64,000 nt of DNA from Rebecca billardiae RCC1528. Lineage: Eukaryota > Protista > Haptophyta. Below, in pieces: positions 43,966-50,493 of the stretch. The position numbers were made by a program, and so were the translations under genes. Below the pieces are notes generated by a model. The model saw nothing but the letters and a program-made list of their open reading frames with translations. It was not told the origin of the DNA and did not search any database. The stretch covers positions 1,602,845-1,666,844 of the forward strand of contig OZ251239.1 of the NCBI GenBank assembly GCA_965240325.2, in the 5' to 3' direction. Every line of letters starts with the position of its first letter. Position 1 is the first letter of the stretch.

Positions 43966-45656
43966 ATGCCGCACGGCCGCGGCGCCGAGGCGGCGCCCGC
44001 GCCGCGCAAGCACACGGTGGTGCTCCAGTCCGTGCCGTTCGAGGTCGACGTGCGGTACACGCCGACCAAGCTCATCGGCCGCGGCGCGTACGGCCTCGTG
44101 TGCGCCGCGCGCGTCGAGCCGCCTCTGCGCGACCCTCTGTCCGAGGACGGGCTCGAGCGCGAGGTGGCGATCAAGAAGATCCAGTCGATCTTCGCGCCCG
44201 ACTCGAACATCGTGGAGGCGAAGCGCACGCTCCGCGAGATCTGCCTCCTCCGCTCGATGGCGCACGAGAACGTGCTGAGCATCCGCGACGTGCTGCTGCC
44301 GCTCGACGTGCGCACCTTCTCGGACGCGTACATCGTGGTGGAGAAGATGGACTCGGACATGCACCGCATCATCCAGTCGAAGCAGGCGCTGTCGGCCGAC
44401 CACACCCGCTTCTTCGTGTACCAGCTGCTCCGCGGCCTCAAGTACATCCACTCGGCCGGCGTGATCCACCGCGACCTGAAGCCGGGCAACCTGCTGCTCA
44501 ACGCCAACTGCGACCTCAAGATCTCCGACTTTGGGCTGGCGCGCACGATCGAGCCCGAGTCCGAGGCGAAGCTCACGCAGTACGTGGTGACGCGGTGGTA
44601 CCGCGCGCCCGAGATCCTGCTGCTCGCCACCTCGTACACCACCGCCGTCGACATCTGGTCCGCGGGCTGCATCTTTGCAGAGCTGCTGGGGCGCAGGCCG
44701 CTGTTCCCCGGCCGCACGCACCTGCACCAGCTGCAGCTCATACTCGCGAGGCTGGGCACGCCGAGCGCGGACGAGCGCGGCGCGGTGCCCGAGCAGATCC
44801 GCTCGGCCATCGAGACCGCGCTCTCCACCACGCGCGGCGGCGGCGGCTGCGCGGAGGGCGCGTCCGAGGGCGGGGGGCTGCACGCGCTGCTGCCGGACGC
44901 GCCGCCGGGCGCGCTCGAGCTGCTCAGCCAGGTGCGCGCGCGCGCACGCGCACGCGCACGCGCGCGCGCACACGCGCGTGGCGCCTCACGCGGCCACCCC
45001 CGTGCGCGCGCGCGCGCGGCCGCGCAGATGCTGCGCTTCGACCCGCGCCAGCGCATCACCGCCGCGGAGGCGCTGGCCCACCCGTACCTCGCCGACCTGC
45101 ACGAGGAGGAGGCGGAGCCGAGCGCGCCGCACGCGTTTGCCCTCGACGAGCTGGACGGGCCCGAGGCGGAGGACCTCGACTGGGGGGTGCGCGCGAGACG
45201 CGGGCGCGGAGGCGGGCGCGCCACGCCGCCCCGCGGCCGAGCCCCTCCCCGCCCCACCCCACCCCCCCGCCCCGCTGCGCGCAGGCGCTGCGCCGCGCGT
45301 ACGTGGAGATCGCGGCAGAGTACGCCCAGGCACACCACGCGCCGACCGCGGACGCGGCGCCGCCCTCGCCGATGAAGCCGCTGCCGCCCGCGGCGCGCGC
45401 GGTGCTGGGCGGCGCGGCGGCGCCGGCCGCGGACGCGCCGCCCGACAGCACGCGCAGCGGCGCCGCGCGCACGGGCGGTGGCGCGGGCGCGGGCGCGGCG
45501 CCCGCCGACGGCGGCAGCGGCATCGGCTCCTCGCGCGCGCGGCGCGCGGCGGCGCGCACGGCGAGCCTCGAGGCGGGCGGCGGCGCGAGCGCGATGAGCG
45601 CGAGCGCGCTCGGCAAGCGGCCGCGCGGGAGCGGCCGCTCCGACGGCGCCACATGA
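43966..45656 (+). CDS. Mitogen-activated protein kinase with TQY activation motif; introns 44932-45027 and 45187-45284
   Basis: IGRGAYGLV, VAIKKI, AKRTLREI, HRDLKPGN, DFGLAR, TQYVVTRWYRAPE and the CD-domain-like HPYLADLHEEEAEP. Confidence 0.95.
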
Positions 45657-46119
45657 GTAGCGCGCGCGCCGTGCCTGGCCTAGGCGGGGTTTTCAAGATA
45701 CTGTTCGCGCTACGATACTACTGATATCGTCGCATTATAATAAACGTGTAGTATTTAAAATAATACGCGCGCATTATTTTATACTACTACTATAGTCTAA
45801 ATATTACTGCTGTACTACACTATTATATTAAATTATATAATATATATATAATATATATATGTTATAAATAAATATACGAAGTCCTATTAGATGACGAAGT
45901 AATTTTTAAAAAAGGACGTGGCCGCGCCATTATTGCATGACGACGACGCGATATACTATTATAATTATATGACGAGCTCGGCCTTGGCTCCTAAGCATGG
46001 CGGCCGCCGAAGCCTCGTCATCGTCATCGTCGTCGTCGCGTGCTGATCATGCTGGATGCGCTCGTCAAGCACGGTCCCCACGCCACGCGCGCGCGCGCGG
46101 CCGAGCGACGGGCGCGCGC

Positions 46120-47837
46120 CTAGGGCGCGCTGAAGCCCTGCGGCAGCCCCGCCTCGTTCTGCAGCATCTGCTCCAGCGTCTGCCGCGCGCGCACGACGTG
46201 CGGCTCTCCGTCCGCGTCGAGCAGCACCTCGGCGCACTCGGGGAACGCGTTGTAGTTCTTCGCCGCCATGCCTGGGCGCGGCGCGCGCAGGGAGGGGGGG
46301 GGGGGGGAGTGGGCGCGCGCGCGGGGGGGGGGGGGGGGGTGCGCGCGCGGGGCGCGCGCGCACACCCGCGCAGTAGGCGCCCGCGCCGTCGACGACGACG
46401 AGGTCGCCGAGCTGCGGCTGGCGCAGCGCGCGCCGCTCGAGCGTCTCCGCCTCGCCCGGCGCGCAGGTGAGCAGGTCGCCCGACTCGCAGCAGTGGCCCG
46501 AGACGATGTACTCGCGCACCGGCGCGGCCGCGTCCGCGGGCAGCGTCGCGATCGGGTGCCGCGCGCCGTACAGCGAGGGGCGCAGCAGCTCGGTCATGCC
46601 GGTGTCGAGCTTGAGGAAGTGGTGGCCCTGCGCCCCGGTCGAGGTCGCGTCCTGCACGCGCGCGAGGATGGCGCCCGCGTTGCACACGAGGAAGGTGCCC
46701 GGCTCGATCTCGAGGTGGAGCGCGCGGCCGTGCTCCTGCGCGAACGCCTCGAACGCCGCCTTGACGGGCACGCCCACCGTCGCCATGTCCGTCGACGCCT
46801 CGCCCGGCACGCGCCCCACCTTGAAGCCGCCGCCCAGGTTGACCGTCGCCACGTCCGGCAGCTGCGCGGCCAGGCCGAGGGTGAGCTCGGCGACGGCCTG
46901 CCACACCGCGGGGTCGGAGCCGCTGCCGATGTGCGTGTGCACGCGCTCGCACGTCAGCCCGTGCTCCGCCAGCGCCGCCTGCGCCTCGGGCAGCAGCTCG
47001 TGCCAGATGCCGAACGAGGACGAGGGGCCGCCCACGTTGGTCTGGGGCAGGGGGCAGCACAGGGGCCAGCACAGGGGGCAGCACAGGGGGCAGCACAGCA
47101 CAGCGCAGCACAGCGCAGCACAGCGCAGCACAGCGCACACCGACCGCACACCAACCGCAGAGGGAAGGCAGGAGCGCGCGTGAGCGCGCGGGCGCGGGCG
47201 CGCGCGCGCGCGCGCGGCGCGGCGCGGCGCGGCGAGGGGCAGCGCGCACCTTGCCCGTGCCGCCCGAGCCCACGCCCGGGTTGATGCGCAGCCCGACGCG
47301 CGCCCCGGCGCACGCCTGGCCGTACGCGCGCAGCTGCGGCACCGAGCACGCGTTCACCTTCACGCCGAGGCCGACGATCTCGGCGAGCTCGGCGCCGGTG
47401 GGCAGCTCCTGCGAGGAGAGCGAGATGTGCGCCGCCGGGATCCCCGCGAGCATCGCGCGGCGCACCTCGTGCACCGAGCTCGCGTCGATCTGGACGCCGA
47501 GATTGGACAGCAGCTGCAGCAGCGCGCGGTTGGGGCACGCCTTCATGGCGAAGCGGACGGTGAGGCCGTGCGCGTTGGGGAAGGCGAGCGCGGTGCGCGC
47601 CTGCGCCACGATCGACTTGGCGTCGTACACGTAGCACGGCGTGCCCGCCAGCGCCGCCACCTTGGCCGCGGTCGGCAGGTCGAGGAAGTTGGGCGTGTGC
47701 ACCGGCAGCGCGGACGCGCGCGCGCCGCAGCGCGGCGAGGCGGGCGCGGCGGCGGCCCGCGGCGCGCGGGCGGCGCGGTGGTGCGGCGGCGAGAAGGCGA
47801 GGAGCGCGGCGGTCAGCGCGGCGGCGGCGAGCGGCAT
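46120..47837 (-). CDS. lysA: Diaminopimelate decarboxylase with probable plastid-targeting leader; introns 47042-47249 and 46272-46365
   Basis: GTPCYVYD, PLP lysine in FAMKAC, LRINPG, HTHIGSG, NLGGGF, IEPGTFLV, LLRPSLYGA, CCESGD and GAYCAGM.AKNYN. The signal peptide ends LLA-F and is followed by an Arg/Ala/Pro transit-like region. Confidence 0.95.
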
Positions 47838-48078: not shown

Positions 48079-48442
48079 ATGTCCGCGCTCGGCCTGCTGC
48101 TCAAGGCGGCGCAGGACTGCCTCGAGCCGCCGTCGACGAGCGTGGGGCGGTACACGAACGACTTTGAGCTCGTCGTGCGCGCGTCCAAGGAGCTCGAGGA
48201 CGTGCTCGAGAAGCGCTTCGGCGCGCCAGACGGCAAGGACTCGGGGCTGCACGACAAGATCAGCGCCGCGCGCACGCCCGACGGCGAGCCGCTACCCGAC
48301 GCGCTCATTCGGCGCATGCGCTTCGTCGTGACGGTGCGCAACAAGCTCGTCCACGAGCGCGAGTTCAACGCGCTCGAGGACCGCGCGGGCTTCGTCGAGG
48401 CGTACGACGCGATCGCGGCCGAGCTCGAGCAGCTCGCGCCGT

Positions 48443-48474
<32 letters not shown>

Positions 48475-48489
48475 TGCGCCGTCATGTGA
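48079..48489 (+). CDS. HEPN-superfamily (DUF4145-like) protein with C-terminal CaaX box, 136 aa
   Basis: All-helical-looking domain ELVVRASKELE..LE..F...GLHDKI...VTVRNKLVHE with an RxxxxH motif (48337-48354). Poly-Gly linker, then CAVM-stop. Confidence 0.75.
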
Positions 48490-48727
48490 GTGCTCGCCGC
48501 CGGGCGCGCGCGGGTGGGCGCGGCCGCCGCGCGCCTCCGCGGAGCCTCGCGGCCGGGGATACTGCAGGCCCTGGCCGCTCCCCGGACCATCTGGTCCTAT
48601 AGTCGACACTGTCGACACTATGAGACTTGGCATCCGCGCCGTTTCAGTATCTCCGTGCTATCGTTAGTACGTTACACGTCATCAAATAACGTCGGCTCGC
48701 GAAGGGGCGCGCCTGTTGGAGCAGTCC

Positions 48728-49429
48728 ATGGCCGCACGGGGCGACGGCGGCGCGGCGGCGGCCGCGGCGCTCGAGCTCGCCGCGGCGCGCCCGCTGCTCG
48801 CCGACGCGCCGGCCGCGCGCAGGCCGCCGGCTGCGCGCAGGCGCTGCGCGCTCGCCGCCGCGTGCGCGGCCGCGCTGCTGCTGTGCGCGGGCGGCGCCCT
48901 CGCGTACGTGCTGGTGAGCGTCGAGGCGCGCGCGGCCGGCGCGCGCGCCGCGCCGGCGGGCAGCGTGGGCGCGTGGACGAACGACTTTGAGCTCACGGTG
49001 CGCGCGACCAAGGGCCTCGAGCACGCGCTCGAGGCGCGCTTCGGCGCGCCGGACGACAAGGCCACCGGGCTGCAGGGCAAGATCAGCGCCGCGCGAACGC
49101 CGGCGGGGCGGCCGCTGCCCGACGCGCTGACGCGGCGCATGCGGTACCTCGCGACGGTGCGCAACCAGCTCGTGCACGAGCCGGGCGTGGACGCGCTGCC
49201 CGACCGCGGCGCGTTCGTGCAGGCGTGCGACGCCGTCAACGCCGAGCTCGAGCGGCTCGCGCGCGGCGACGAGGCGGACGACGACGACGACGACGACGAC
49301 GACGACTCGTCCGGCGGCGGTGGCGGGTGGGCGGCGGGCGAGGGCAGCCCCGGTCGGGTCGCCCCGGCCGGGCGCGCGTCCCGAGCCGCGGCGGCGCAGC
49401 ACCCGCTGGGCCCTGGCCCGCGGCGGTGA
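48728..49429 (+). CDS. HEPN-superfamily (DUF4145-like) paralogue with N-terminal TM anchor and poly-Asp tail, 233 aa
   Basis: Clear paralogue of 48079..48489 (SVGAWTNDFELTVRATKGLE...ATVRNQLVHE; RxxxxH at 49160-49177). RRR precedes the hydrophobic CALAAACAAALLLCAGGALAYVLVSV. Confidence 0.75.
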   Translation: MAARGDGGAAAAAALELAAARPLLADAPAARRPPAARRRCALAAACAAALLLCAGGALAYVLVSVEARAAGARAAPAGSVGAWTNDFELTVRATKGLEHALEARFGAPDDKATGLQGKISAARTPAGRPLPDALTRRMRYLATVRNQLVHEPGVDALPDRGAFVQACDAVNAELERLARGDEADDDDDDDDDDSSGGGGGWAAGEGSPGRVAPAGRASRAAAAQHPLGPGPRR

Positions 49430-49527: not shown

Positions 49528-50493
49528 ATGGCGGCGACGCGCACGCTTTTGCTGCCGGCGGCGGCGCTCATCGTCACGGCGGCGGCGGCGGCGCGCGCGG
49601 ACGGCGCGCGCCCCGCGCCCGGCGCGCGGCTCGCCGCGTGCCGCTGGTCCGCCGGGCTGCGCGCGCTCGAGTCGGAGCGGCTCGACTGCGCGTTCCACGA
49701 CCCGCTCGCGCGCGCGCTCGCGCGCGGCGTGCCGTACCGCGAGGAGGCGCGGCCGCCGCGCGGGCAGGTGGGGCCGGTCGTGGCGCGCGCGATGATGATC
49801 GACGCGGCCGTCGCGCGCGCCACGCGCGCGGCGCACGGCCCCAAGCAGGTCGTGCTGCTCGGCGCGGGGTGCGACACGCGCGCGCAGCGGCTGCGCCACC
49901 TGCCGGGCGTGCGCTTCTTCGAGGTGGACGGCGCCGCGGCGCTGCGGCGGAGGCGCTGGCTGCTCGGGCGCGCGGAGCCGCGCGACGCGGGCCGCGCCTG
50001 CCTCGACCTCGGCCGGCGGCCCGAGCGGCTGCTGCCCCGGCTCGCGCGCTGCGGCCACGCGCGGACCGCGCCGACCGTGTGGGTGGCGGAGGGCGCGCTC
50101 ACCCAGCTGCCGCCCGGCAGCGCGCGCGCGCTGCTCGACGCGCTGCCGGCCGAGCCGCCGGGGAGCCGTGTGGTGTGCGCCGTGCCCAACCGGCGCATGC
50201 GCACGCCGCCGCGCGGCGCCGCGCGCGCGCTGCTCGCGCGCGCCTCGCCGAGCGCGCGCGCGCTGCTGGGCGCGTGCGCGACCGACGCGCAGCAGCTGCG
50301 CGAGCAGCTGCCGCCGCACTGGCGCGTCGCCAGCGCCGCGCGCACGTTCACGCGCGGCGGGCTGCGCCGGTACGGGCTGCTCGACCGGCGCGCGGGCGTG
50401 GCGCGCGTGCACCGCGCGGGCGGCCTCGCGCGCGCCGTGCGGCGCGGCGGCACCGAGGTGGTGCTCGAGCTCACGCCCGCGCGGCGCGCCTGA
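49528..50493 (+). CDS. SAM-dependent methyltransferase, LCM/mycobacterial ML2640-like family, with N-terminal signal peptide
   Basis: AGLRALESER...FHDPLARALA, VARAMMID, QVVLLGAGCDTRAQRL, FFEVD and PTVWVAEG. Confidence 0.85.
   Translation: MAATRTLLLPAAALIVTAAAAARADGARPAPGARLAACRWSAGLRALESERLDCAFHDPLARALARGVPYREEARPPRGQVGPVVARAMMIDAAVARATRAAHGPKQVVLLGAGCDTRAQRLRHLPGVRFFEVDGAAALRRRRWLLGRAEPRDAGRACLDLGRRPERLLPRLARCGHARTAPTVWVAEGALTQLPPGSARALLDALPAEPPGSRVVCAVPNRRMRTPPRGAARALLARASPSARALLGACATDAQQLREQLPPHWRVASAARTFTRGGLRRYGLLDRRAGVARVHRAGGLARAVRRGGTEVVLELTPARRA

Follow-up and report, generated by a model that had tools for sequence, protein, structure and literature searches.

Two adjacent HEPN-like proteins of the haptophyte Rebecca billardiae with different putative membrane-targeting signals point to a branch of minimal, membrane-tethered HEPN domains

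A 64,000-nt stretch of contig OZ251239.1 from the haptophyte Rebecca billardiae RCC1528 (positions 1,602,845 to 1,666,844 of the forward strand; NCBI GenBank assembly GCA_965240325.2), hereafter the window, carries at 48079-49429 (window numbering throughout) two adjacent genes, copy 1 and copy 2, that each encode a HEPN-like domain of about 100 amino acids (aa). Analysis of the two proteins and their relatives suggests that the pair is a lineage-specific tandem duplicate within a small-domain, widespread and apparently undescribed HEPN branch, whose nearest named family is DUF4145 and whose defining habit would be to tie a minimal HEPN domain of roughly 100 aa to a membrane. The tether appears to depend on the lineage, being a C-terminal transmembrane (TM) helix in bacteria and, putatively, a pair of lipids in haptophytes, diatoms and oomycetes, with myristoyl at the N-terminus and farnesyl at the C-terminus. 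In the explanation that we favor and regard as probable, the domain is a dimeric, motif-dependent endoribonuclease confined to membrane-proximal RNA, with copy 1 at the cytosolic face and copy 2 re-addressed via the secretory route; its activity, lipidation, topology, substrates and role are inferred. A symmetric homodimer would be the most likely form, in which two R-N-x-x-x-H motifs would be joined into one metal-independent endoribonuclease site that would cleave RNAs coming near the membrane. The two genes and their parts are laid out as follows.

48079..48489, plus strand: copy 1 gene, 136 aa, with a 20-aa N-terminal extension (M-S-A-L-G start), the HEPN-like domain, a G10 linker, CAVM and the stop
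48139..48438, plus strand: HEPN-like domain of copy 1, aa 21-120, with helices 28-46, 57-63, 74-92 and 102-119 in the AlphaFold2 (AF2) model
48337..48354, plus strand: RNKLVH motif of copy 1, R87-H92 (Rx4H), at the end of helix 3, in the predicted dimer interface and aligned by hhalign to the HepT motif
48445..48474, plus strand: poly-Gly linker of copy 1, (GGC)10, between the domain and the CaaX Cys
48475..48486, plus strand: putative CaaX box CAVM of copy 1, of the farnesyl type (X = M)
48728..49429, plus strand: copy 2 gene, 233 aa, with an Ala/Arg-rich N-region (M-A-A-R-G start), a hydrophobic segment, the HEPN-like domain, D10 and a disordered tail
48836..48922, plus strand: RRR (aa 37-39) and 26-aa hydrophobic segment (aa 40-65) of copy 2, a candidate signal anchor or signal/targeting peptide
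48962..49261, plus strand: HEPN-like domain of copy 2, aa 79-178, from the alignment to copy 1 and the AF2 model
49160..49177, plus strand: RNQLVH motif of copy 2, R145-H150, from the sequence
49277..49306, plus strand: poly-Asp run of copy 2, (GAC)10, aa 184-193, from the sequence, not conserved in homologues
49307..49342, plus strand: S-S-G5-W-A-A-G-E of copy 2, tentatively a decayed remnant of P-S-Gn-C-A-V-M-stop

The two open reading frames (ORFs) lie head to tail on the plus strand, and their shared domains are identical at 68 of 100 positions without gaps (E 3e-45; DNA identity 79%). When all 72 Mb (41 contigs) of the assembly were searched with a profile, just these two copies turned up. 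The in-frame GC content at third codon positions (GC3) is 0.96 in copy 1 and copy 2 alike, and from 48728 to its domain, copy 2 contains no further in-frame ATG. Despite their 32% mutual divergence, both copies retain 18/18 invariant columns of a 24-member family alignment, for which we estimate a chance probability of roughly 1e-3. The sequence elements that an original prediction, made from the letters of the window, had described are present, namely the adjacent paralogues with RNKLVH and RNQLVH, the poly-Gly-CAVM end, the RRR with the following hydrophobic segment, and the poly-Asp run. Its proposal that the acidic tail might be an RNA mimic was rejected, because the tail is not conserved in homologues. 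The same post-domain linker bears different trinucleotide repeats in the two copies, (GGC)10 in copy 1 and (GAC)10 in copy 2.

The AF2 models of both copies are four-helix bundles, with a predicted local distance difference test score (pLDDT) above 90 in the core of copy 1 and of 91-97 in the domain of copy 2, and both show the HEPN-type up-down arrangement, in which an insert separates helix 2 from helix 3. When the domain of copy 1 was compared exhaustively by VIA-align with 48,161 Protein Data Bank (PDB) chains, the top matches were mostly members of the HEPN superfamily, with 2hsb (AF_0298) as the best at Z 9.1, followed by 1wwp, HepS, YutE, HepT (5yep, Z 8.1), sacsin, Roquin, Csm6, Cas13, AbiA and the HEPN-related MtlR; the non-HEPN protein DrrA/SidM was also among them at Z 8.6. 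The best Foldseek matches were HepS (probability 0.96), HepT and Csm6, and the search of the ESM Atlas by shape returned, beyond the family's own clusters, PF05168 HEPN, HepT-like, Csm6_HEPN, MtlR, DUF4145 and HEPN_Apea structures at TM-scores of 0.55-0.65. HEPN domains are described as having the motif where helix 3 ends, and a conserved acidic residue in helix 2 (PMC3710099); matching this description, R-N-x-L-V-H closes helix 74-92, and a conserved G-L-H-[DE]-K lies within helix 57-63. The HEPN fold and the motif placement of the original prediction are thus supported by the models and by the matches from all three structural searches.

At the sequence level, Pfam and NCBIfam scans of both window proteins gave nothing meaningful, and a profile search of the PDB sequences gave 0 matches at E up to 10. 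Several family members have sub-threshold Pfam matches to HepT-like, RiboL-PSP-HEPN, DUF4145, DUF3644 and HEPN_Apea, and weak matches were found to HepT_toxin in NCBIfam and to the Cas13a and Csx20 HEPN models in PADLOC. Using hhalign against 23 collected HepT sequences, a match was obtained at P 1.8e-5 (probability 78%) in which R87-H92 was aligned onto the catalytic R-x4-H of HepT, while the match to DUF4145 was weaker (P 1e-3). A Variovorax member that bears the RefSeq name 'DUF4145 domain-containing protein' matches copy 1 at E 3e-12. The cut-off of DUF4145 (PF13643, 23.1 bits) was not reached, the best scores being 18.3 bits for P0151 and 14.5 bits for the Vibrio member, with no match for the window proteins, and the best HepT scores were 20.3 against a cut-off of 23.5 bits (PF01934) and 17.5 against 60 (NCBIfam NF047751). 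We conclude that the domain is part of the HEPN superfamily, where it forms a family of its own close to DUF4145 and outside every curated family.

Dimerization with the two motifs facing each other, which the original prediction had wished to see checked, is supported by structure prediction. For residues 20-122 of copy 1, a homodimer was predicted with an interaction score (ipSAE) of 0.70 vs 0.01 for the best control, three runs shared 100% of the contacts, and the pLDDT of the partner was 93; the pass mark applied was attained by 21/30 proteins with a solved homodimer structure and by 0/23 with a structure solved as a single chain. The predicted interface comprises helix 1 (27-41) and residues 88-97, with N88 and H92 among them and the two V91 residues in contact across the axis, and the model would therefore juxtapose both RNxxxH motifs at a two-fold interface, as is characteristic of HEPN domains. 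Bacterial and eukaryotic members alike have an unvarying R, N and H in the motif, which was present in 239/259 sequences, with many of the exceptions being fragments. This conservation bears on a different reading, namely that the HEPN domain has no catalytic role and serves to bind RNA, nucleotides or a protein partner at the membrane, in an MtlR- or sacsin-like manner. The HEPN domains of MtlR, sacsin and Roquin do score as high as RNases in the fold comparison, and motif conservation alone is no proof of catalysis; however, non-catalytic HEPN domains are usually without the motif (PMC3710099), and with R, N and H invariant in both domains of life we hold a purely binding function to be quite unlikely.

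An exhaustive HMMER search gave a family of 548 cluster representatives at E up to 1e-3, whose commonest form is 115-135 aa long, starts with M-G-x-x-x-S, a myristoylation consensus, and ends in a farnesyl-type CaaX. Ser6 is present in 58/64 of the small MG-starting forms, and 55/64 of them carry a CaaX box too. A CxxX end was found in 82/157 family proteins, with I, V, L or M at a2 in 82/82; the X position is M in 27, C in 24 and S in 22 (73 together) and L in 5, and the linker from the domain end to the CaaX Cys has a median length of 15 aa. Taken as a sequence pattern, these anchors fit N-myristoylation combined with mostly farnesylation. The MG...CaaX forms in the Atlas clusters belong to Haptophyta (122 members), Oomycota (57) and Bacillariophyta (50), the nearest Atlas cluster being labelled Haptophyta, copy 1 has homologues at 58-60% identity, and one named match is from Cyclotella. 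P0005 comes from an MMETSP transcript, which shows expression of the family in a relative, and the genome under study has two N-myristoyltransferase (NMT) loci, several prenyltransferase-beta loci and genes resembling isoprenylcysteine carboxyl methyltransferase (ICMT).

With the Cys at -4, the aliphatic a2 and the conservation among orthologues, the CAVM of copy 1 has every mark of a genuine CaaX box, as had been claimed, and the end of copy 2 is no such box. The M-G-x-x-x-S/T start is absent from both copies, which begin with M-S-A-L-G and M-A-A-R-G, respectively, and the 240 bp between copy 1 and the divergent decarboxylase gene contain no ATG-GG, so no upstream myristoylation exon candidate exists there. 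The pattern that the original prediction overlooked is the main one: the ancestral eukaryotic form appears to have been doubly lipidated (N-myristoyl plus C-farnesyl). From this ancestor, copy 1 would have lost the myristoylation Gly and kept the farnesyl box CAVM, which would hold it at the cytosolic face of endomembranes by one lipid anchor. The apparent N-terminal TM segments of the database homologues P0043, P0107 and P0023 were rejected as over-extended ORFs upstream of an internal MGxxxS start. The genes next to eukaryotic members vary between contigs; in a single case, on a 141-kb metagenomic, diatom-like contig (L128, 3947-8363), an MG...CaaX HEPN gene lies just downstream of a gene for an SMUBP-2/IGHMBP2-type RNA/DNA helicase that has an R3H domain.

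The domains of 175 sequences were placed in a tree, in which the two copies cluster with P0005/P0169 and P0040 at a Shimodaira-Hasegawa-like approximate likelihood ratio (SH-aLRT) support of 94, and this group is nested among the eukaryotic MG...CaaX forms. Because the pair nests inside these forms, it would have arisen when a lipidated ancestor was duplicated locally and recently. Copy 2 would then descend from a CaaX-type protein that gained an Arg-flanked hydrophobic segment of 26 aa and now has no CaaX box, possibly via decay. We tentatively read its S-S-G5-W-A-A-G-E, which follows (GAC)10, as a decayed CaaX end in which TGC changed to TGG and the stop was lost, with the stretch being of low complexity and aligned otherwise by MAFFT. 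The hydrophobic segment reaches a Kyte-Doolittle value of 2.26 over 19 aa, which was equalled in 0.6% of 1,177 75-aa ORF chunks taken from the six frames of the window, and on this ground it is not a by-product of GC content. In the AF2 model, aa 34-70 form a single long helix, and the tail from 181 has neither secondary structure nor a confident fold. The N-terminal flank of the hydrophobic segment contains five Arg and has a net charge of +4, compared with +1 on the C-terminal side. By the positive-inside rule applied to these charges, the N-terminus of copy 2 is most likely cytosolic, and the nuclease domain, re-addressed by the secretory route, would be luminal or exoplasmic or would pass onward to an organelle. 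The earlier idea that one nuclease could be placed on both faces of a membrane has this charge rule (+4/+1) as its sole basis, and the segment may just as well be a cleavable or organellar signal.

Such a signal is the essence of an alternative in which the leader of copy 2 is a cleavable signal peptide or a bipartite organellar presequence, of the plastid type or for mitochondrial sorting, and copy 2 is a soluble HEPN nuclease in an organelle or the secretory lumen rather than on the opposite face of the membrane of copy 1. Relatives indicate that this kind of re-addressing has occurred in the family. Those of 300-350 aa form a well-supported clade (SH-aLRT 95; P0047, P0051, P0056, P0065, P0067, P0074, P0075, P0084, P0087 and P0111, and loci L005 and L006), whose N-terminus consists of a signal peptide, an ASAF-, ASGF-, ATGF-, ACF- or SAW-type motif and a conserved RPV..ARHAS..VAI stretch, that is, a diatom-type bipartite plastid presequence. 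A C-terminal [DE]-[VI]-[YF]-R-A is present in 7 of the 10 listed proteins (P0047, P0051, P0056, P0065, P0067, P0084 and P0087), and P0074, P0075 and P0111 end otherwise. This clade is a candidate plastid or periplastid HEPN nuclease, and it suggests that other lineages independently sent paralogues to the plastid; P0035 combines a plastid-type leader with a leftover CaaX box. In copy 2 itself, the A-L-A followed by Y at aa 57-60 conforms, in our reading, to the -3/-1 rule, and the +1 residue is aromatic, as it is in plastid presequences, so that a signal peptidase might cleave there; the neighboring decarboxylase has a similar leader ending in AF. On the other hand, at 39 aa and with three acidic residues the n-region of copy 2 is unusual for a signal peptide that is cleaved off, cleavage would leave just about 20 aa for a transit peptide, and copy 2 falls outside the plastid-type clade. 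A soluble, imported copy 2 is therefore a real but rather unlikely possibility.

Several points weigh against the tethered endoribonuclease that we favor. The Z values of 7-9 lie in the range that helical bundles can reach by chance and are not decisive, the structural weight lying in the enrichment for one superfamily; no family member reached a Pfam or NCBIfam cut-off; and the predicted dimer may owe its score to solved HEPN dimers that the model remembers. The membrane affinity of copy 1 may be weak, because the second membrane signal of nearly all relatives has been lost. No orthologue with the architecture of copy 2 was found among the 548 representatives of the exhaustive HMMER search, so that of the two anchors whose conservation the original prediction had wished to see surveyed, the CaaX proved conserved and the TM form did not recur; the homologue searches started with copy 2 (whole, or region 79-180) were empty, probably on account of low-complexity words and the length filter, and say little. 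Finally, the dN/dS (nonsynonymous to synonymous substitution ratio) between the two domains is 0.67, which is not clearly purifying, a value made uninformative by the extreme codon bias (GC3 0.96) that compresses dS; function of both copies is argued for by the retention of every invariant residue.

The same dN/dS, the apparent loss of the CaaX and the shifted stop codon of copy 2, the trinucleotide repeat expansions in the pair and the missing orthologue could also be taken to mean that copy 2 is a decaying or neutral duplicate, whose hydrophobic N-terminus, poly-Asp run and read-through tail are accidents of GC-rich, repeat-prone DNA, and that copy 1 alone is functional. What argues against decay is that copy 2 keeps the 18/18 family-invariant residues at 32% divergence, that its frame is open over 233 codons with a GC3 matching coding sequence and a domain pLDDT of 91-97, and that a hydrophobic segment like its own is rare (0.6%) in spurious ORFs of the same DNA. 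We thus think it quite improbable that copy 2 is a mere relic.

The original prediction had also called the domain bacterial-type, and bacterial relatives do exist. They are about 115-125 aa long, with the domain starting from residue 1 and followed by one C-terminal TM helix. When 185,579 species genomes were scanned, 80 loci were obtained, including 39 in Planctomycetota and 39 in Pseudomonadota (largely Vibrio), and the C-terminal TM was found in 75/80 of these members. More than 25 Vibrio species have the gene at a single conserved chromosomal locus, in the manner of a core gene. Plasmids also carry members, namely a megaplasmid of Variovorax, a plasmid of Alteromonas and Col-type plasmids of E. 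coli of 2-4 kb, and the same tail helix is present in both plasmid members that were translated (Variovorax and one E. coli Col plasmid). Across the 80 bacterial loci, no partner gene is conserved between phyla and no antitoxin-like neighbor was seen. A gene for Dps, a ferritin-like stress protein, lies tail-to-tail immediately downstream in 10/39 Planctomycetota loci (L010, L011, L016, L023, L031, L032, L035, L038, L042 and L063) and 1.3-2 kb upstream in 5 Vibrio loci (L041, L061, L072, L077 and L078); we judged this proximity to be lineage synteny rather than a functional link, and a stress-related link may exist. The mobilisable Col-type E. coli plasmid NZ_CP145633.1 (L134, 2078 bp) has only two genes, for a 144-aa tail-anchored member and a helix-turn-helix protein, a layout that resembles an addiction or exclusion module.

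These relatives are the best ground for assessing the antiviral or toxin role suggested at the outset, which in its fullest form would make the family a stress- or infection-triggered toxin or an abortive-infection-like antiviral effector, harmless while sequestered at the membrane until released or clustered. Minimal HEPN RNases of solved function are mostly toxins or defense effectors (HepT, HepS, Csm6 and Cas13), the tail-anchored members on small E. coli Col-type plasmids stand beside a helix-turn-helix protein, and the active-site residues are intact. Against such a role, queries with the window proteins, a Vibrio member, plasmid-type members and the long forms were assigned to no PADLOC family; no relative was found in 50,697 phage records by tblastn or in IMG/VR viral contigs; the 80 bacterial loci offer no conserved antitoxin-like neighbor; and the Vibrio gene behaves like a core gene. 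An antiviral or toxin function thus found no backing, and we regard it as unlikely.

Among known systems, DUF4145 belongs to the HEPN clan and is often encountered in bacterial restriction and abortive-infection settings. The present family shares its fold class (Atlas TM-score 0.59), its sub-threshold hidden Markov model matches to DUF4145 span 20-86 of 88 positions, and the automatic names in RefSeq and the Atlas call some members 'DUF4145 domain-containing'. However, sampled DUF4145 sequences mostly have G-N-x-x-x-H instead of R-N-x-x-x-H, and the family here is a stand-alone domain of about 100 aa with a membrane anchor, no member of which reaches the Pfam cut-off. HepT/DUF86, of the type VII MNT-HEPN toxin-antitoxin systems, gave the best profile-profile match (P 1.8e-5) and is likewise a small dimeric HEPN, the dimer being predicted here; it differs in having R-x4-H-x-Y where the family here has H-E-R, with R or another residue instead of Y two positions after the His, and family members are membrane-anchored and have no MNT antitoxin gene nearby.

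Ire1 KEN, RNase L and C6orf70/ERMARD resemble the favored explanation in being membrane-held HEPN nucleases that act as dimers, a state that is predicted here, and the active site of Ire1 is also R-N-x-x-x-H. Unlike the bare, putatively lipid-anchored domain described here, which has no sensor, these are large proteins of several domains that bring sensor or kinase modules and a protein TM anchor. Membrane-tethered housekeeping endoribonucleases are known in RNase E (amphipathic helix) and RNase Y (N-terminal TM), where location shapes the transcripts met; their folds are unrelated to the family here, and the analogy is one of function only. RNA degradation at the endoplasmic reticulum membrane has been predicted for the TM-bearing eukaryotic C6orf70 (PMC3710099), and three bacterial TM-linked HEPN groups were proposed to cut RNA at the membrane through cytoplasmic HEPN domains on inner-membrane proteins (Anantharaman et al. 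2013, PMC3710099, section 15). One of these groups, planctomycete proteins with an N-terminal HEPN, two TMs and a Zn-ribbon, may overlap the longer bacterial members found here, whereas the simple HEPN with a single C-terminal TM and the eukaryotic lipidated and plastid-targeted forms are absent from that paper. The same 2013 census, which also covers the TM-bearing Ire1, includes no alga, diatom or stramenopile and mentions lipids once only, for membrane perforation by aegerolysin domains, and never as protein anchors (PMC3710099). Full-text literature searches found no paper describing a lipid-anchored HEPN. What appears to be new, judged from the sequences, is a HEPN family defined by interchangeable membrane tethers, dual lipidation included.

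HEPN nucleases hold a central place in prokaryotic defense (Cas13, Csm6, HepT and HepS) and in the responses of eukaryotes to stress and viruses (Ire1 and RNase L), and the known systems are controlled via sensor domains or antitoxins. The bare domain here appears to be controlled solely by the place of its tethering, and the tether seems to have been swapped several times, among a bacterial TM tail, a pair of lipids (myristoyl and farnesyl) in three major groups of protists, the plastid presequence of the diatom-type clade and the N-terminal hydrophobic segment of copy 2. If the domain is active, it would be, as far as we found, the first lipid-anchored HEPN RNase and a compact, testable model of how location restrains a potentially toxic nuclease, and a candidate RNA-decay or immunity factor would be added to ecologically dominant algae and to oomycete pathogens. 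A bolder extension, which we offer as speculation with little chance of being right in full, is that haptophytes, diatoms and oomycetes have in common an unrecognized minimal HEPN ribonuclease with two lipid anchors, which polices RNA on the cytosolic side of membranes, for example at membrane-bound RNA-virus replication sites or on membrane-translated mRNAs, that plastid or lumen paralogues arose repeatedly by anchor swap, and that the pair is a snapshot of this switch between two compartments. Because the family occurs in diatoms (e.g. Cyclotella), orthologues are probably present in tractable model diatoms.

The pair is flanked in the window by a decarboxylase gene upstream and a methyltransferase gene downstream, neither with a visible link to it.

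45965-47837, minus strand: pyridoxal phosphate (PLP)-dependent decarboxylase of the diaminopimelate (DAP)/ornithine type, split over two reading frames (intron or frame change near 47150)
49528-50493, plus strand: leucine carboxyl methyltransferase (LCM)-family methyltransferase (PF04072, E 1.7e-25)

The signal-peptide-like leader of the decarboxylase ends in A-F, consistent with plastid targeting. The LCM family is normally cytosolic, and the hydrophobic, signal-like N-terminus of the downstream protein is unusual for it. At 45650-46100, the GC content falls sharply to 0.35-0.44, compared with 0.70-0.87 in the rest of the window.

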